This document shows positions 39,876-51,736 of a stretch of 64,000 bases of DNA, piece after piece (the stretch's first letter is position 1; each line of letters opens with the position of its first letter). This stretch comes from Ascidiella aspersa (Eukaryota). The stretch spans positions 558,001-622,000 of the forward strand of contig OZ004614.1 of NCBI GenBank assembly GCA_963924565.1, read 5' to 3'. The notes beneath the pieces were generated by a model. It did not search any database. It saw only the letters and a program-made list of their open reading frames with translations, and was not told where the DNA came from. Made by a program: the position numbers and the translations under genes.

Positions 39876-42800
39876 ATGTATTGGGATATCACTGCCCGTA
39901 AAAAGGCTCTTTACAAGGGAGTATTAGTTTCTCTTGCCACGGCTGGAATCCTATGTTTAAGTTTCTTAATTTTCTCGAGCCAACAAAAGCCTGTCAGTGC
40001 GAAGGCGATCATTTCCGATCCAACACAACAACATGGATTTTTCTCCAGCGAAAGATTTGACATCGAAAAGTTTGAGGAAGGAAAAGACCCGTTTTCTTCG
40101 AACGACTACTTGCCGAGGAAACTCGCACATCTAGTTTCTTTCTCCGAGAAAGCTTTACATCCAGAAGCCAACTTATCGACGGTCATAGATAATGGTATTT
40201 CGGCTCGTACAAACTTTTCCTACTTGCTTGATGACCTCATTGCAACGGTGAACGTCTACAACTTCTTCTATTACATGTGGGGATGCAAGCAGTTGAAAGA
40301 AATGAAAGTAAGCAATGTTTCACACATCTAAGAATTGTTTTTGAGCTGTTCTACTCCACTTTTTATTAATTGGCAAAAGCAGAACCAAGTTTTGGTAGTA
40401 CTAGATTTATTCCTTATTTGATAATACATCTAATTTATATCTAATAATAAATTGGTTTGTACAGAAGATTAAATTGCTTTGGTTTAAATTAGATGCTTAT
40501 TATATGAAAGTAACAGCAGTTTATACCTATATATAAGTACATACATAATAAAAAATAATCTTATATGTGAATTTATATTAATTTTTAGTTTGATATTTCA
40601 AATTTTCAACTTTTCGAAACTCCCAACCCTAAATAGCTTATTCTATTCTCCAGCCTTTAAATGTTTGTTTTTTAAAGATTTATAAATTCACACACTTTTT
40701 TGAAGCTGTTTCTTTAATTCTTTAAAATATTTTTTCCTGTTGATGAACGATTTATTCCATTTTATTCAGATTGAGGATGTGTTGTACGACACTAAGCACA
40801 AGACTGTTTACCGAGCTATACAAAATGAATACCAAGTTGCTGTAGAAGTGGCAACAGTGGACGTTGACGAGCTGATTTCAGCTCAATGTGGATCGGCAGA
40901 TTCAGATCATTCGCAACAAAACTTGGACAGATGCTTCCTCATCAAATACAGGCATAATTTAATTTTTTTTTTAAGTTAATGTTTGTCAACCTTTTTTTCT
41001 GACGGGATCTAAATAGCAAGCATAACTATAACATCAAAGTGTTTGACGACCTATTGCTATACTTCATTAATGAACTTTTTTCTCATTACTTAACTTTTTG
41101 TAATTGGTCAAAACGTAAGACAAATAACATAACTCAAATTGAATTTAACTAATATGAACCATATTTTATTATTTCTTCTACAATTTTCTTAATTTTAGAG
41201 CAATTTTTAATCATAATTTTAATATTTATAGTGATATTAAACTTTAGAGCATAATAGCTGGAGGTTGTAGTTAGACGTAGAATATCAATGCACATAAAGA
41301 AGTATGTACCATTTGAACGTTGTTGCACTGAATATGTGAATAATAGAAATCACCTTGACCCTTGCAAGATAAATGTCGACCTTAATTCCTGATCAGTAAC
41401 AGCAAAATAATCTAGCAAAGCTAGCAATTCAGGTCAGACACATTAACCAGATCTTAAAAAGATATATATATATTTCGCCAACTAAGGCATCGTCAGTATA
41501 TCTTAATTCGAAGATTCATTCGAATTAAGATATACTGACGATGCCTTAGTTGGCGAAATATATATATATCTTTTTAAGATCTGGTTAATGTGTCTGACCT
41601 GAATTGCTAGCTTTGCTAGATTATTTTGCTGTCCATTTGAACGTTTTAAACAATTCTTTAATTATTTTCAACATTATTATATATATTTTCTTATTTCAGG
41701 CATGTTCTTGAAGAGGCGGTTATATTGTCGCAGTTCTCTCACCCAAACCTTGTCAAAGTTGTTGGATTATGTGTTCAAAGGCCAAATGCCGCTGTTAAAT
41801 ATGGTAAACCAAACTTTTGTTTATATCAGTTTAATTTTATGCATATCAATTTTTGCTACAACTTTAAGAAAATTCAACTTATATTGGGGAGCTAAATATA
41901 TAATGAAATATATTTTAAAATATGCCTAAAATATTCACAAGGTCTTAAATATTGTTAAAAATAAACAAAAATTAACAAAGTTTAAAAAAGTTAAAAAGAT
42001 AGTTTTGCTAAAAAATAAAAATACCCTTTTAACTTGTCTAGTTTAGTCTGTCCTCATTATTGACCACTTAATATTTTTTTCTGTAAAAGTTTACCTTATC
42101 TCAACAGCCATATAATTGGTATATCACCATACTTATAAAACTACTGTATTCATTTGTTTAAATTGTTTTGTTGTAGAGAGCAAGATTTCATCGTCATCTG
42201 GGGTTGTTCTCATCAAAGAAACAGGAACAGCGGTTAACATTGATAAACTAAAGCTCATGACATGGAACCAAAAAATACAAGTAATTTACCTCAAAATTTA
42301 AACAAATAAAAACTGCCAAGAAAATATCAAATTGTTGTTAAAGATTTTTAAACTTTCTAGAAGTAAAGGCAAAAGGTTACCATAGTGTTTAATATTTTTT
42401 TACCAGTAATCCTAACTTTAAAATAATTAAAAGTTGTTTCTAAATTTGTTACTGTTATAAAAACACACTAAATCATATATCTTTGCGATCCTTAGGATTT
42501 AAAAAAACAAAATCCTACCCCTGGTGCCCTCCAGTGTCAACAATGTTCCCTTGCAGATCTGCTTCGACCTTGTGTCGTTCGCAAACTATTTGTCGCGATC
42601 TCCGGTTGGAAGCGTCTTGTTCCAAGGCTGGGACGTCGAAAACTTTATTCTTTCGCCCAAAAGTGGGACGATTAGGCTCCGAACGTTCGGCCAAAACATC
42701 CAGGTGTCCGACCCATCGTGTGTCAACAATGCTGATTGTTATGTGGACGGAACAGACGCAGGTAAACATCTTTTAAGCTTAACGTTGGCAATTTTATGTG

Positions 42801-45800
42801 ACATTTTGTGTCAAATTTAAAGTTTGAATTCCATTGGTTTGTTAGTTAGAGCAGGGCTTATCAAACTTTTTGATAAAAGAAAAACATCGCGGGACAGACA
42901 ACTGTTGCATTTACGATTGCGGGCCGTTATTAATTTTTTGTCATACTCTTTAACTTAAATATATTATCCAAGAAAAGGCACCAAAAACTTGAGTTTTAAT
43001 AAATTGTCATTTAGTTTGAAATTTAATCATCATATTGTTTGGAATTTGTTTATCATGTTGTTTTCTTGTTGTTTTTTACTTATAAAAAGCTATGTGAATA
43101 AAACTTGGTCACAAAAGCTTTGTTGTTACACTTATGTCCGTGATAAAGGTTGAGAAACAATGTAACTAATTACGTCTTGTGCAAGGGAATAGAGTCAGCT
43201 TATTTGAGTTTTTTGTGATTTAAAAACACTTTTGTTTTACTTTTTCCAAAAAAACTGTTAAAACTGTAAATATAATTTTAATGGTGAAAAAAAAACGGCC
43301 CAAATTGACGTAAAAAGCGACAAGTTTATTGTTCAAACATTTCGGCAAATGCTCATGACATGTGGCCTTAATATCACTGATGATGGCATGAGCATTTGCT
43401 GAAACTTTTGAACAATTAAGCATGTTGCTTTTTACTTCTATTTTGGCCGTTATTTTCACCATTAAACTTATGAACAGACCCGTATATAGTGTTCCAATGT
43501 AAATATAATGTTTATTATAGCTCTGCACTATAGTTTTGATTCCTTGATACTTCTGTTTTAGGATAAATTATAAAACAAGATTTTTTTGCTCAAAGCAGTG
43601 AATTAATTTATTCTACATATTCTTTCGGGTGCCTTTGAAACTTTTCTACTACATTACCAGAACTAGTGCTTTATTGTCTCTTGTTAAAAATAAACTTAAC
43701 ACAAATTTCACAAAATAAAATATTTAAAACAGTCAAGGTTAAACTTTTTTATTTATTTCTGTTTTTTTTACAGAACACCCATTCAGTCTATTAAAACAAA
43801 AAATTACCCTAAACCTGCTTTACAAAATTCAATATTTCTCCAGACATTCTGTGCTACAAGAAACGGTGCAAGGGGTACAATGACCTGAAAAATCTGGCAG
43901 ACTTGGGCCAAACCTTCCTGCTCCCCCTTCTCCAGTACGGAGTTCCACCGGCCAACGTGGCCAGCCAGGCCAGGGACATTATCGGCCAGCTGAAAGTAAA
44001 TTCACTCTCCAGCAAAGAACTGCTCTTACGACTGGAGAAGCTGATGCCAAACAGTAAGTAAAGTTACAAGTTGACACGATTAAGTGAGAATATCAAAGTC
44101 GAGACTGCATGAACTATGTTGAAAATGAATAAATAGATGTTTGAAATGTTTCAAATGCTACCTACTTATTGCATATGATGTTCTATGTTGCTTTCAGTAA
44201 CATATGCTGGAAGCTTGCTTGTTGATCAAATTATGTATAAATTAAATTGTCTGACTATAATAAGGGTTCCTAGTTTTAAATTTGTCTAACACATTAAAAA
44301 CTAGTTAATTTGAAAATATTTACTTCAAAATGTATATAGATTTATTTCAATTATCACTTTTTTGCATATATTTTTGTAAACTTTTGTTCAATAATAAAAT
44401 AACAACATCTTAGTTTTATAATGAATGTCAAAGCCCAAAAGAACTTGTATCATCATCAGTTAATGTGACTGAAGTAAATTCAAACCTTGTTCATTAAATC
44501 CTTATTTATCTCAGTTTAATGTCGCAAATTTATTCCAACAGTCCCAGGAATGAACAGGAACGGAGCTAACGAACTCCTCGCACAGCAAGAAGCAAATAAC
44601 AACAACCCTGCCATACTAAGCATGAGAAAGTTACCAGATGGTTCACAGGTTTGTTTGTATGAGCCAGGTCATGTGAGCAACTTAACTTATCAAAAACGTT
44701 TGGGAATCACTGCAGTATATGATATGCAGTAAAACTTGGTATCGTGAAAGTATCTTTACTACAGTCTAGTATCGTATCGAGTAATGTATAAACACTAGGC
44801 TAACCATGACAATAAGTCATAAATTGCTTCATCGTTAATTATACCATCCAACTAGTACCTACCTACTCTGGCCCATTCAAAATGCCCACAAATACTTATT
44901 CTTTGCATCCAACAGGTTGACTCATGGGAACAACACGAAGCCCGGGTGTCAATCAACGAGGTGAACGCTCGAGGCGCAGCCCTAAAAGCACCAGAAAAAG
45001 ACAAAATCGTTGAGCCACTTCAACCTGAGGCTCCACGCAAGCAAGATGTGAGTTGCAGATAAAACTTTATTGGTTATTGGGTATATCAGTCATATAAGTT
45101 TGTAAATTGCAGGACACGAATTTTATGCCTTTGAAAAACGATTTGGGGTAGGTCGGTTTTTCATGCATTTTTATGCCAGCAAATTGGCTGTAAAACTACC
45201 TGCGGTGGGATTCAAATTCACAACCCTAGTCTTAACATTATGTTTAATTGTTTAATTGAAGTTTATAATAATTATTTGCAATTGCAACTCTATTCATATT
45301 TGCATTGACGTGTTAAACAAGTGTTACAAAACACTTTAAACAAATATTTAACACCAGGTAAACTTAGTTGCAGTTTCAATTTGCCGTTTTTTATCCCTTA
45401 TTTGAATTTGTTTTTTATTAATTTTTTAACAAACAAGTTTTTTTTATCACCATCTTCAAACTACTTAATGAAGCCCTTGTCATAAATTTTAAACCACGAC
45501 CCTTTGACCCCATATTTCATTCCCACCCCTAAATCCCTTAAACGGCCCCAAGTCACAAATTCAGCCTCTAACACCAACCTTTTAAATCAAACCCCTCAAG
45601 AGCACCTTAAAGTTATTTCTCAGCTTTAAACGCACACATTAATTGAATTGTAAGCTCTTAAAACCTCTCCAATTTTTAATCAAAGACAGATTTTTTCTTA
45701 TAAGTGAAAATTTCAATAAGTGCAAAAAACACAGCAAAAATCTATTTTTTATGAAAGAAGCCATTAAAGCCCCAACACCCCCAATTTTCATTCTGATTCC

Positions 45801-48800
45801 CCTATACCATCTAAAAATTTCAATATAACAAAGTTAATTTATGAAAAACACACTTTTAACCCCCTAAAAAAATTTTTCACCCCAGCCCCCTCAGAACGCG
45901 GACAGCAAACCATCCCCAGCGGAAGGATACCAGAAGTTCGACAACGCAGACTTCCCAGGTCGTTACGACTACTACTGCCCGAACAGTAAGGCGGAGTGGG
46001 GGTGTGTGATGTCACTAAGGTCACCACAGGAGGCCATGGACAAGTGCAACAGCGACCCCAAGTGCAAGGCATTCGTCACTATTCCGCATCTACGCAAAGA
46101 AGGTGGGAAAAATGGAAAACAAATTTGACGCTTTTTAAGTTATTTTAAATTTTTTTTGGTATAACGTTTGGAAAGAGAAATAAAAGTGGTAAAAGAAAGT
46201 TAAGGGGAAGGAGATTCCTTGATGAGGTTTATAAGTCACTAACTTACTTGGTCGCAGTTCGTTGATGGAAAACGGGTTTTGGTGAAAGGTTTTTTTTTCC
46301 ATTTGGTTTCACTGTCTTTTCTCCAGCGCAAAATAAGTTGAACCTTAATTTTGAGTAGAGCACCCGCCTTTTTCTCTTTAATTTGGCCCCAAACCAATCA
46401 TTTTAAATTTAACCACATAAAACTACCACAGCGACCAAACCAAACGGCTGCACAATTTGAGTCGCGAGACACTGCAATTATCAAGATTGAATTATTAGAT
46501 TTACACACTGGCCGTGGACAAATAACTAAAGCAAACTGCGCCAGCCTTGTGCGAAATGGTGTGTCAACAAATGAGTCGCGTACTTATAACTTTGTTGTAG
46601 TTATCAGAATTAAGTTACTGGATTCATCGCCCTATGCTAACACTTAGTTTGCGACCAGGTGAAACATTATAACATAGTTCGGAATTTGGGAATGTATGTT
46701 GAAAAGTTTCCTCCCTTGAACGAGAATGTCTTATGACCAGGTTGGATAATCGCCATCCTGAAGTCTGACAACTCGAAGCCGGTCGATCACGCTGGAACAA
46801 TGGTCTTTGTTCGCACTTCCGAGAACAAAGGACCCCAGGTGGTTCCCCCCAAAGACGCGGAGCACGAAAAAGTGGAGGTGAGTTTTTTTTATTTCGGGAA
46901 CGCACTTTTGTGCAACTAGATTCTGTTACCTACTGCTGCTGATTTGTAAATTCGTTATTTGTTAAGGTTTTAGTTAGGTTGTCAAGATAATATTGTTAAA
47001 GATTTTTCACTGTGCCAATGAAATAAAGCGTTGTTTGAGAACTATAAGGTTGTTATTCCCTGGCTTGAATATTTTTATGTTGAAGGCAAAATTACGAAAC
47101 TAGATTTTGTTTTCCTCTTCTGCTACTTTGCAAAATTAAAATGATTTAGCATTCATGACTGACATGATAATATTGTGGTTGTTGGTGATAATTTAGAGTT
47201 GGTCTTTTCTGCCACTGACATGCGATGAAAGTTTTTTTAATGAAAGGTTTGATGCGACATCTTGCTGTGGTTGCGATTTAGCATGTTTTACGAAAAGTTG
47301 CAAGATTTAAAATTACTAAAACTTCTTTACCAAGATGATTATTTTAACTATTTGCGAAACTGCAAATATACTCTTCACAAACATAATGAGCAAACACAAG
47401 AAGCGTGTCTTTTAAATCAAGAAAAGTTATCCTTTATGTTTGCTTTTGTTTTGTCAAGATGATTTTTTTCTAATATGTGGCGCTATTAATGCAAAACAGT
47501 ACCAATAGACATATTAATTAAAATGGAATACATCAGTGTTGTTAAATTCCACTAAAGTTAATAGGAGCGCAAATTTTGCAAGTATGCGCAAAGTATGATA
47601 TTTCTCACATATCGTTGTGAAATTATAGTCACACTTGTCGTTAGCGTTTAATATAAACCACATAATGCTTGTCAATGCAGATAGCCTAATACATAGGACA
47701 ACTGCATAAAGCAGTATATGAATATGCGTTACGGCTCGTTAGTGTAAATATCAATGTGTTTGTTCAAGCTTAGCACGTCAATCTAGCTTCCGCTGTACTT
47801 AGCAATAAAAATGTGGGATCACATCGGCTAAAATGAAGCTTACAGATGCGTGTTTCTATTTTACTTCGAACACAGCATTATTTATGTTGCGCCGTTTCGC
47901 ATACTGTTAATTACTTTATGGTTATAAACTGGGTAAGGAATTTATGAAGTACAATTTTATAAGGCACCTATGTTTGCAGCGTGACGTCATGCTAGTAAAT
48001 GAACAACTTAAAACATTTATTTAGTTTGATGCTAAATTAAAACAATAGAAACATATGGAGTGCGTTTGGGTAATATATGAAAATGTTTTGTAGTTCGTTG
48101 ACGAAATAAAAGTAAAAATCTAATCAAAACTAAATAAAAATCAAATTGAAGCAAAATAGAACAAAGCTTAAAATGAGGCCAATGGGGGAATTATGTCAAA
48201 TATTTTCATTCTAATATAACAACAAGGTCCTGGCATATTTCTAAACGCACTAGAATTGTCATGATTAGAAGGCTTTGTTTGTGGTGTTTTGTGAGTGAGG
48301 AGAAACCGGTTTTAAACAACGATCTTTAAACTTTAAACATGTAGTTTAACTTTTTGTTGGCCATCCTATTTAAATAGTACAAGCACCTGCGACAAAATGT
48401 AAATAAGTCTTATATTAGCAGGAATAGAAGATTTTGACACATACTCGGCATTTTTAGTACGACGTCGTTTATTGTTGGTGTGCGAAATGTTGCACTTATG
48501 TGGGTAGGAATTGACATTAAAAATGTCCCGCAGAATGTAGTTTTCTAAACAATTGAGAATCTATTTCTACAATGTTCTTAATTGCAAGACTAACTTTACT
48601 GTTTTTGTTTGACAAAATATAATTTTGGATGAAAATACAGCTTAACTTCCTAGTGGTAGAATCGAACAAATCGGAACTAGTCCAAAATTATAAACTTCTG
48701 CAATACTTGAAGCTTATTTTTAAACTGTGTGCCGCGGAACGTTTTACATTTGGAAAACAACGTATTAGCATTAAAAAATGTTATAAGTAAGCAAACACGT

Positions 48801-51736
48801 GAGAGCTGGATTAAAACGGTTCATTATATAATTGATAATTTGGTAAAATTTACCTACTGAATTGAAGTCTTGCAAGTTACAAGGCTATAAAAACACACAC
48901 ACATTACCAAATGGATTTTTAAACAACTTTATTTTGAAGGAAGTGCATCGGGGGGTTTTATTGTTTTAGTTTTTTTTGTAGTAACCTAAAAAAATCGAGA
49001 AATAGAAAATTTCAGTTATGCGGTGTGAAAAGGATCTCATTACTGTACAACAATAAACCACTTTTTATTACGTCACAAACCACTCATTGTTCATGACAGG
49101 CTTCCGAAACCAAGGACGACTGTTTGAGTGACGTCATAGTGACGCAGAGCCAGGTTCGTGACGCAAGAGAAGCTCAAATGATGAAAAGCTGCGGATGGGC
49201 AGGTCGGTTGTTACGTAACAATTACCAACAATTAACACAATAAGTGTTGTTTATGTTTATTTGAAATACCAGATGAATTTGTACAGATAATGATATTTTG
49301 GAAAACATCATCGGGCTAATCCTAATATTTCGCGCGCAAACTCGATCACGTGACAAACCCATGTTTTGGCGCAGGAATGAAGGACGCTGATTGGCGGAAG
49401 TTGATCGAGGAGAGCAAGGTTGAGAACGCCAACACATTCAAACCAGCTCGTGGAAAGCTGGCTGTTGGAGGGCAGATGAACGTAGATCTGAGGGTTGCCG
49501 GTTCGAACCCCCGCTTGGCCCTCTTCCTATCTAAACGCGGTCCTGAGGAGTTTGAAGTTTCGCAACTGGCTGTTCACCAACTCGATCGAATGCTGGGGGT
49601 AAGTTACCCAATATTATGGATAATTTAGGGGTAAATTACCTAATGTGGGGCAATTTAGGGGTTATAGATCCACCGTTGGTTAATTTAGGTATAATTTTTG
49701 GCATAGATAACTTTTTCTCTTGCTACATTTACTAAAATACAATCTTGTTTTTCTTTTGCATATTTTTAGTTGTTATTTTGAAATGACAAAAATAGCAACG
49801 AATTATTGTCAAGAGATTTGAATTAACCCGAAAAAAAAGTTATTTGTGTTCCACCGGTCGTCAGTCAAACATCGAAACAAGTGACTGGCGACACCAAGAC
49901 ACTAACACAGTACTGTAATGCGTTGCTTTAGCCAATGTAATTCTTCTAGGTATTTTGTAAAAAAATGTATAGATCAAAAAATAATCGCCCTAGTCTTGTT
50001 TTAATCAAAATTCATCAGGATAAATGCTGAAACAGATCGAATCAGCGAGTGAAAATAACCAGTTGTGGTAACGGCTTATCTTTTTCACTTTTATTTTTCT
50101 TGCGAAAGTTGTGGTAACGGCCGATTTATTTTTTACTTTATTCTTCTACTTTTTTGCGTAGTTGTACAAGACGGTTCCTGCCATTGAACGTGAGCTTAGC
50201 GAGGCTGAATTATCAGAAGCTGGATTCCCGGTCGACATCGGTGGCAACCAGTTCGATAAGTTCCGGCCGATGAAGATGGCTGACAACTCACTAAGAGGCG
50301 TCATTATACCACTTGTAAGCCCCCCCCCCTTTGTTTTGTCCAATTAAGCTACGTTTTACTTTCTTGTCGTTTTTTATTAATATTTCTATGAATTATATAA
50401 TTGTAAGTGCCAAGAAAAATGGTAACACTGCCACGCCATAATGTAAACCATGCTATAAAACGAATAATATACTCGCAAAGCGCGTAATTTTGCGTTTAGA
50501 TATTGTTAAAGTTGGCAAAACATATAGTTTGACTACAGGGCCACATTTGGCATGCTGGTAGGAATTTAGACCAGCGCCGATTTTTGCGTTTTAAGTATTA
50601 AATTAACCATCGCCCAATATACTTGCAAGCACCGCGGGACTTGTTAAAACGGACATAAATCATCATTACTATTCTATGTAAGTATATTGTTAAAACGGTT
50701 GGTGCTTTATTGCGTAGATACGATGGTAAAGTCAAGTTACAAAGGTTAGCACAGCACAAACACGCGTTTATAAATGTACACTTGCGAAATAGGAAAAACG
50801 CTTGGATGAGCGTGGATGCACATCGGTAGGTTCGCTACATTGTTGTGTTTGCAGATCCAGGAACGTACGACAGTTGTCCACTACATTTCTGTTCCTCGAT
50901 TGAGTGGAATAACAAACGCAGTTACCCCGTTCAGTAGAAGACAGTGGGACGACATGGAATACCTACTCCTCGGATTCCTCGCAGCAATACCAGTGCCCAC
51001 TAAAGGGCACCAGAGCGTACAAGGTGATGACGTGTTCTTGGTCCTTGATGGAAAGTAGCGCATGATTATGCTCACAAATTTATTTAAACCTTATTTTACT
51101 ACGCCTATTTGAATGAAAGACCGCTAATTCGGCAGAAATTTGCTTTAAAATGTGTATAATTTTTTAGAATTAAAATCGCTTTAATCAAAATGTCTACTTT
51201 AACTCCTTAATTGCAATAGTTGATTCTTCTTGTCAATAAAATGCCCAACCTTTTTCGTAATTATTTTTCTGCACCTTTTTACTAAAATAATTTAACAGAG
51301 TTATACGAAATATATAAGTGGTTAAAAAAATAAATGTAAATTTGCATTTTTGGCCTTTATTTCTTGACGATAATAGAATTAAAAAGAATAAAAAAAAAAC
51401 TAATTTCGGAAAAATAACTCGGGTTGTTACGTCCACTATGCAGGTCGCCTGATGCACATTAAGACCGACGATGCGTTTCTCGAGCACAACGGGAACGATT
51501 ACATTTCCTACCTCTACAACTGCCAGTTCCCACGCCACGTCATCAACACATTACGTCAGGCCGTTGCCAAGCGATGCGACCTGAAACGCCAAATCCACAC
51601 GCGCCTATTGGTCCAGGGGTCGCCCAAGATCGGAGAACTGCTGGAGCGGAACGTGGCGAAGTTACTGGACCTTGTCGATGAATGTCGCACCAAGTTTGGC
51701 ACCAACATGGTTCTGTACGATTCCGTCAAAAAATAA
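39876..51736 (+). CDS. Type II membrane secretory-pathway protein, 923 aa: PKDCC/VLK-like kinase fold, Cys-rich PKDCC C-terminal module, then FAM20/FJX1/GASK-like kinase fold; both kinase folds degenerate
   Basis: 15 phase-consistent exons: 39876-40307, 40770-40951 (GC donor), 41700-41803, 42177-42280, 42557-42761, 43844-44053, 44542-44648, 44916-45047, 45886-46102, 46741-46877, 49100-49202, 49375-49598, 50162-50314, 50855-51023, 51444-51736 (2772 nt). N-terminal signal-anchor. PKDCC-like GCKQL, HPNLVKVVGLC, YLSRSPVGSV, CKGYNDLKNL, DYYCP..WGCV..C..DPKCKAFV. FAM20-like QLAVHQLDRMLGLYKTVPAIER, YLYNCQFP, LLDLVDECRTKFG. Confidence 0.8.
41459..41504 (-). ncRNA. Mirror copy of the hammerhead ribozyme
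   Basis: Exact reverse complement of 41527-41572. Confidence 0.7.
41527..41572 (+). ncRNA. Minimal type I hammerhead ribozyme (PLE-type)
   Basis: Stem I AAGATATA/TATATCTT, core CTGACGA plus T, stem II GCC-TTAGTT-GGC, GAAA, palindromic TATA, UA cleavage site. Confidence 0.7.

Follow-up and report, generated by a model that had tools for sequence, protein, structure and literature searches.

FAM20A is a secretory pseudokinase that serves as an allosteric activator of FAM20C, and belongs to one of two unrelated-looking groups of secretory-pathway kinases, FAM20/FJX1/GASK1. The other group consists of PKDCC (VLK), FAM69/DIPK and POMK, and reviews treat FAM20/FJX1/FAM198 and PKDCC/FAM69/POMK as separate, single-domain groups (PMC7948968, PMC3696010). 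Here we describe a gene of the sea squirt Ascidiella aspersa, located at positions 39876–51736 (+ strand) of a 64,000-nucleotide stretch of DNA (the window; GenBank assembly GCA_963924565.1, contig OZ004614.1, positions 558,001–622,000), that probably combines a member of each group. From its sequence, the locus is best explained as a single-copy gene of 15 exons and 923 codons coding for an anchored secretory-pathway protein with a PKDCC/VLK-like domain and a FAM20-fold domain, both of which are predicted to be pseudokinases. In order from the N-terminus, the protein would consist of a signal anchor, the PKDCC/VLK-like domain (N-domain), a PAN/apple module, a short Cys-containing linker and the FAM20-fold domain (C-domain). 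A full-text literature search found no description of a protein with this architecture, as had been stated in the initial annotation of the stretch, which was made from the letters alone. What is new is the conserved domain fusion and a FAM20-fold subfamily that is undetected by Pfam; the proteins themselves are already in public databases.

The N-terminal half resembles PKDCC/VLK in its N-terminal anchor, in a Cys-rich kinase fold with the PIP49_C domain, and in the PAN/apple-like module that follows the kinase domain. It differs from PKDCC/VLK by Glu, Gly and Thr at the positions of the β3 Lys, the HRD Asp and the DFG Asp, by the additional C-terminal FAM20-fold domain of ~310 residues, and by an overall length of ~923 residues, as compared with ~490 for the vertebrate proteins (484 in the ESM Atlas cluster).

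The C-domain is similar to FAM20A in its FAM20 fold (Z-score of 22.1 to PDB codes 5wrr and 5wrs), its lumenal location and its predicted inactivity through a lost ATP/metal-site residue. The catalytic set of Fam20C comprises the metal-binding D478, the catalytic D458, the K285/E311 ion pair and E306; in FAM20A, the metal Asp, the catalytic Asp and the ion pair are all intact, and E306 alone is lost, being replaced by Gln (PMC4421793). In contrast, the C-domain of the present gene shows the reverse pattern: an acidic residue is kept close to E306, whereas E311 is replaced by Gln, D478 by Lys, and the catalytic Asp is absent. The analogy with FAM20A that was drawn earlier is thus inexact, a different set of residues having been lost. 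Additionally, the C-domain is not seen by the Pfam Fam20C model, and Fam20C, the presumed partner, is reported as lost from tunicates (PMC5865150), which weakens the role first proposed for this protein as a scaffold coupling VLK and FAM20C.

A likeness also exists to GASK1A/B (FAM198A/B) and FJX1. The ESM Atlas scores of the C-domain are 0.93 for FJX1 and 0.90 for GASK1A, and are alike (0.90–0.93) for these two, FAM20B and FAM20A; weak FAM198 matches (PF15051) occur in 7 of 15 family members, sub-threshold and at the αC motif, with a best E-value of 0.035. Unlike the known GASK1 and FJX1 proteins, which are single-domain, the C-domain is part of a fusion, and it falls below every family cut-off. 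FAM198 proteins have no demonstrated kinase activity (PMC7948968).

The coding region of the A. aspersa gene was delimited as stop-free segments with GT/AG boundaries in the window, which is eukaryotic with ~35% G+C. The gene spans 11.9 kb with 14 introns, and its 15 coding exons total 2772 nt, corresponding to 923 codons and a stop. The phases are compatible at all 14 introns, and 13 of the 14 have GT-AG ends. The exons are as follows.

39876–40307, + strand: exon 1; start ATG, basic stretch and a 19-residue hydrophobic segment (putative type II signal anchor), then a poorly conserved stalk and the beginning of the kinase-like domain; phase-0 donor GTAAGC; equivalent to Clavelina residues 14–138
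40770–40951, + strand: exon 2; YDTKHK as a degenerate Gly-loop, VAVE at the VAxK position, and a Cys/Asp-rich insert; GC donor at 40952
41700–41803, + strand: exon 3; helix αC region HVLEEAVILSQFSHPNLVKVVGLC; match to PF07714 with E=0.0012
42177–42280, + strand: exon 4; hinge region and beginning of the C-lobe
42557–42761, + strand: exon 5; catalytic-loop equivalent FQGWDVENF (HRD Asp to Gly) and DFG equivalent TFG (Asp to Thr)
43844–44053, + strand: exon 6; remainder of the C-lobe, CKGYNDLKNL...
44542–44648, + strand: exon 7; linker of low conservation; a second acceptor, 6 nt further downstream, would keep the phase equally well
44916–45047, + strand: exon 8; linker with a conserved VDSWEQHE motif; donor GTGAGT
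45886–46102, + strand: exon 9; PAN/apple module, first part, YDYYCPNSKAEWGC...KCKAFVTIPHLRKE; conservation among the highest in the gene
46741–46877, + strand: exon 10; completes the PAN/apple module and begins the inter-domain linker; phase-0 GTGAGT donor at 46878
49100–49202, + strand: exon 11; linker Cys and the FAM20-like domain's N-terminal helix; AG acceptor at 49098–49099, phase-1 donor at 49203
49375–49598, + strand: exon 12; N-lobe strands of the FAM20-like domain and helix αC SQLAVHQLDRMLG, with the ion-pair Glu replaced by Gln
50162–50314, + strand: exon 13; LYKTVPAIER...GFPVDIGGNQFDKFRP; 80% identity to the Phallusia orthologue
50855–51023, + strand: exon 14; catalytic-loop equivalent LGFLAAIPVPTKGHQSVQ, with no acidic residue; phase-1 donor GTGATG at 51024
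51444–51736, + strand: exon 15; HIKT in place of FAM20 HLDN (metal-binding Asp to Lys) and C-terminal helices; stop TAA at 51734–51736

The two halves are predicted to be joined by splicing at 46877/49100. The exon upstream of the GTGAGT donor ends at 46877 in phase 0 (frame ...PPKDAEHEKVE), and the exon after the matching acceptor begins at 49100 on a codon boundary, both as described in the initial annotation. The orthologue of Clavelina lepadiformis (XP_076811342.1) aligns to the window by tblastn collinearly from residue 14 to 887 and straight across this junction, which is flanked by segments at 46740–46850, 49112–49204 and 49362–49613; the junction is therefore not a chance match. This alignment, together with at least 10 orthologues that have the same continuous two-domain open reading frame (ORF), bears out the proposal of a single polypeptide. 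The locus is the sole match to the Clavelina protein in the 308.6-Mb, 75-contig genome, and the gene is thus single-copy. The frame from 49100 does open into the FAM20-like domain, but it is not uninterrupted as first described; four more introns follow exon 11, all of them phase-compatible (49203–49374, 49599–50161, 50315–50854 and 51024–51443). The N-terminal half also requires the small exons 42177–42280, 43844–44053 and 44916–45047. The sequence GDDVFLVLDG at the end of the exon 14 ORF was considered as the HLDN equivalent and rejected, as the orthologue alignment identifies it as intron read-through past the 51024 donor.

Domain identities were established on the orthologues, which are 45–83% identical to the window exons, and the window was searched exon by exon. 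A candidate for the anchor is the hydrophobic segment GVLVSLATAGILCLSFLIF after RKKALYK in exon 1, and all orthologues have an equivalent segment. The PIP49_C domain (PF12260) is above cut-off in all 13 full-length orthologues, with a best E-value of 7.5e-12; a scan of the A. aspersa genome with PF12260 did not pick up the locus, and the putative PIP49_C membership of the window gene rests on orthology. Against solved kinases, the family profile matches BIK1 (9.5e-6) and POMK (6.6e-4), and a full-length AlphaFold2 (AF2) model of an orthologue matches Csk, POMK and TKL kinases. The nearest ESM Atlas cluster to the N-terminal half is annotated as ‘extracellular tyrosine-protein kinase PKDCC’ (score of 0.97). 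The earlier assignment of this half as PKDCC-like agrees with these matches. The PAN/apple module corresponds to residues 81–171 of the model of one orthologue (P0003), and superposes on the PAN (N) domains of plasminogen and HGF with Z-scores of 9.5–10.2 and root-mean-square deviations of 2.2–2.9 Å over 74–77 residues; its four Cys residues are nearly invariant. The PF12260 scan also gave two weak matches elsewhere in the genome, one to a cytoplasmic kinase of the RIPK-like type and one to an ORF of unclear nature, and no second PKDCC.

The FAM20-like fold that had been suggested for the C-terminal half is well reproduced in the AF2 model of orthologue P0003 (predicted local distance difference test, pLDDT, of 71). 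The top Foldseek matches of this model are to the Fam20 family alone (E ~1e-10), and VIA Z-scores are 20–22 over 268–292 residues against Fam20C, Fam20A, Fam20B, Hydra Fam20 and Caenorhabditis elegans Fam20. The next fold after the Fam20 family is that of PI4K II, with a Z-score of 13.7. A C-domain-only profile searched against the whole PDB matched only the Hydra (4.8e-5) and C. elegans (2.3e-3) Fam20 proteins. The Pfam Fam20C family (PF06702) matches none of the 15 family members, and scans of the A. aspersa genome with PF06702 and PF15051 did not detect the locus, PF15051 giving no match at all. No relevant PDB match was obtained with phmmer for exons 12, 14 and 15, and an hhalign comparison of the family with a single exon of the genome's own Fam20 gene gave a probability of 0.1. 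On these profile and model comparisons, the C-domain is a remote, unclassified branch of the FAM20 superfamily, and the homology is real.

The motifs quoted in the initial annotation (YDTKHK, VAVE, FQGWDVENF, RTFGQ, LGFLAAIPVPTKGH and HIKTD) are all present in the exon translations. In the N-domain, the HRD and DFG columns were set by profile alignment to BIK1/RIPK, and the β3 Lys by pattern only. The HRD Asp is Gly in this gene (FQGWDVENF) and Asp, Ser, Asn or Gly in the family; the DFG Asp is Thr (TFG) here and Asn, Asp, Ser, Thr or Glu in the family; and the residue at the β3 Lys position is Glu (VAVE) here, Glu or Gln in all tunicates and Lys in amphioxus. The catalytic-loop Asn and the αC Glu are kept in the N-domain of this gene. 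Since the replacements at the catalytic columns are lineage-specific, the loss of catalytic constraint in the N-domain would be of long standing.

In the C-domain, the αC motif SQLAVHQLDRMLG aligns unambiguously in HMMER with NAEIAAFHLDRLLG of Hydra Fam20, NAE being replaced by SQL, and the ion-pair Glu (E311) is an invariant Gln. HLDNAKSF aligns with HIKTDDAF, such that the metal-binding Asp (D478) is replaced by Lys; every chordate member has Lys or Arg at this position. Acidic residues are entirely absent from the catalytic-loop segment LGFLAAIPVPTKGHQSVQG. An alternative alignment of Fam20 ‘ALFKP’ to ‘ALFLSK’, which would place Leu at the ion-pair Lys, was dropped, as the HMMER alignment fits the number and lengths of the strands better. 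The canonical catalytic residues are thus gone from both halves of this gene, as had been proposed, and mostly so across the family, and we infer that both domains are pseudokinases.

Orthologues of 840–976 residues were identified in other sea squirts and in three amphioxus species, so that the architecture, which the initial annotation had proposed to survey among invertebrates, is not unique to this genome. An exhaustive HMMER search with the last exon (window 51446–51733) matched 11 proteins, five of which have 804–953 residues and match at the extreme C-terminus. The orthologues are Clavelina lepadiformis XP_076811342.1 (890 residues), Styela clava LOC120325659 (954 residues), Phallusia mammillata (910 residues), Ciona intestinalis LOC100184284 (894 residues), and those of Branchiostoma belcheri, B. 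floridae and B. lanceolatum (864–927 residues). They are named ‘uncharacterized protein’ in RefSeq and UniProt, with one amphioxus protein automatically named ‘PKDCC’. Seven further complete ORFs of 838–976 residues are found on contigs of 2.6–4.8 kb. These contigs are probably spliced mRNAs, as judged from contig and ORF length only, because the same gene here spans 11.9 kb with its 14 introns. In a tree of the C-domain, the short contigs nest within the tunicates, with amphioxus as sister and a protein of the hemichordate Ptychodera flava as outgroup.

Exon by exon, identity is highest to Phallusia, and the C-domain and PAN exons are the best conserved (62–83%). The C-domain sequences of Ciona and Styela share 50% identity, and those of tunicates and amphioxus 35%. 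Conservation of the C-domain and the PAN module extends over both tunicates and amphioxus and includes columns of Cys, Gly, Gln and Asp that do not vary, and the many invariant cysteines across the family fit a lumenal location. As far as these sequences indicate, the fusion is an old and conserved feature of the invertebrate chordates (tunicates and amphioxus). Word-indexed searches with the N- and C-terminal halves of the amphioxus protein returned amphioxus proteins only.

Some further matches were noted among related sequences. An ESM Atlas cluster of 60 mollusc ‘hypothetical proteins’ of ~939 residues contains PIP49_C and scores 0.92 with residues 95–575 of orthologue P0013 as query; from the cluster length, protostomes may also have proteins that combine a PKDCC-like domain with a sizeable additional part. 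Two RefSeq amphioxus isoforms (P0016 and P0019) start at residues 335 and 227 of an 875-residue protein, inside the N-domain and not at the boundary of the two domains, and N-terminally truncated products may exist in amphioxus. Five stretches of a 4014-residue protein from Petromyzon marinus (XP_075909057.1, P0010) match the last ~55 residues of the C-domain (E 2.5e-4), and BLASTP of this protein against the amphioxus orthologue gave no alignment; the match may represent a repeated C-terminal helical hairpin or chance.

Several points weigh against the interpretation of the locus as a double pseudokinase. The exon-by-exon Pfam search of the window gave only PF07714 (E=0.0012) and PAN_4 (E=0.07, exon 9). 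The full-length orthologue model has a predicted TM-score (pTM) of 0.41, and predicted docking of the N-terminal half against the C-domain scores 0.00, which speaks neither for nor against an intramolecular contact. If donor 46878 is unused, the frame stops at 46917, 13 codons on, and a short isoform ending there, or a C-domain-only transcript from an intronic promoter, may be made. The pseudokinase assignment of both domains is a prediction from residues, the N-lobe strands of the C-domain can be aligned in two ways, and the K285 column is uncertain and conserved in neither alignment. Moreover, the acidic residue of PEEF and the Lys of RGK, which align with E306 and K271 of Fam20C, are kept, and POMK was once thought to be inactive (PMC5865150).

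The last two of these points would also favor a fused protein that has an active enzyme of an atypical kind in one domain or both, acting as a kinase of glycans or proteins or as some other nucleotide-dependent transferase, in the manner of POMK or SelO. The strong conservation of the C-domain and the catalytic-loop Asn and αC Glu retained in the N-domain are consistent with such an enzyme, and the Lys or Arg at the metal-Asp position could contact phosphate directly. We nevertheless regard an active enzyme as unlikely, as at least three canonical residues are gone per domain, the replacements in the N-domain vary by lineage in the pattern of a relaxed catalytic constraint, and the catalytic loop of the C-domain is without any acidic residue.

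The stand-alone hemichordate protein also bears on catalysis. P. flava XP_070554245.1 (P0006) has 419 residues and is a whole-length homologue of the C-domain (E 6.6e-35 to amphioxus), with the same invariant Gln and C-terminal helices. It differs from the fused proteins in having an N-terminal anchor of its own without a PKDCC or PAN part, in keeping Asp at the HLDN position (VIDSD), and in having DNQH for Fam20 DRHH. This protein may represent an active FAM20-superfamily member that has so far escaped description, which is a further point for an active enzyme. Judged from its residues, the comparison points to a loss of catalysis that either followed or accompanied the fusion.

The genome's only Pfam Fam20C locus, on contig 9 (13132273–13142659; L001–L004), has intact DRHH and MDNAK motifs. 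It contains a DNAK...FGNP motif and an FGNP...LAPLQQCC exon as in the Hydra xylosylkinase, and looks to be of the Fam20B type, fitting the reported absence of Fam20C from tunicates.

A more far-reaching scenario, and one that is quite doubtful, is that the ancestral chordate PKDCC-family gene was itself two-domain. It would have captured a FAM20 module that then lost catalysis and become a lumenal, nucleotide-sensing kinase regulator, from which vertebrate VLK, and perhaps GASK1, would descend by loss or fission of the second domain. Under this scenario, the Fam20B-type xylosylkinase controlling proteoglycan synthesis would be the candidate for the regulated kinase in tunicates, and the FAM20-superfamily module would still be free-standing, and possibly active, in hemichordates.

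A very improbable alternative is that the locus comprises two neighboring genes, a PKDCC-like gene that stops at 46917 and a FAM20-like gene with its first exon within 46900–49400, in which case chance would account for the spliced junction, and the orthologue models would be read-through artefacts. Vertebrate PKDCC ends right after its PAN-like module, the hemichordate C-domain is a separate protein behind its own anchor, and the frame stop at 46917 is followed by an AATAAA at 47022. This hexamer is, however, uninformative here, with 250 matches in the window. Within 46900–49100 there is no ORF having an ATG and a hydrophobic anchor, and exons 11–12 contain no signal sequence, in agreement with the earlier observation that the C-terminal half lacks a clear signal peptide of its own. 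Additionally, the linker matches the orthologues residue by residue across the junction, and a single ORF spans both domains in the seven transcript-sized contigs and in RefSeq models from eight species. From these sequence comparisons, a two-gene arrangement might at most give a minor isoform and is unlikely as the main product.

A decaying PKDCC copy with a degenerate, functionless appendage can hardly be credited: the catalytic residues are lost in both domains and Pfam is blank on the C-terminal half, but all 15 exons are open with compatible phases, the gene is single-copy, and the C-domain and PAN module keep their invariant Cys, Gly, Gln and Asp columns from tunicates to amphioxus.

Intron 2 (40952–41699) has unusual features. 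It has an apparent non-canonical GC donor (AG/GCATAA) and a normal AG acceptor, and the hexamer AGGCAT is present at both exon edges; no GT donor at this intron yields the conserved orthologue junction between KYR and HVLEE. The intron also contains a perfect palindrome (window 41399–41632) with two 114-nt arms that are 100% complementary and 6 nt apart. This palindrome gives only sub-threshold matches to generic hairpins (microRNA precursors) in Rfam, and no hammerhead family at E<=1 or the gathering score.

As a double pseudokinase, the protein encoded by the A. aspersa gene would act through both domains without phosphotransfer, in the lumen of the Golgi or on the cell surface. It could be a module for binding or regulation that is stabilised by disulfides, and might for instance serve an active secretory kinase as allosteric partner or substrate adaptor. 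Metal-independent nucleotide binding would also be possible, because a basic residue replaces the metal Asp.

One member of each of the two groups of secretory-pathway kinases thus appears to have been joined in one lumenal polypeptide since before the divergence of tunicates and amphioxus, with the catalytic residues lost in both domains and yet with strong conservation of the second. The Ciona orthologue LOC100184284 provides a genetically tractable case for the function of secretory pseudokinases. Together with the fused proteins, the hemichordate relative, which has two catalytic Asp residues, would form a before-and-after pair for the change from kinase to pseudokinase, and the family may have a bearing on the origin of vertebrate VLK and possibly of GASK1.

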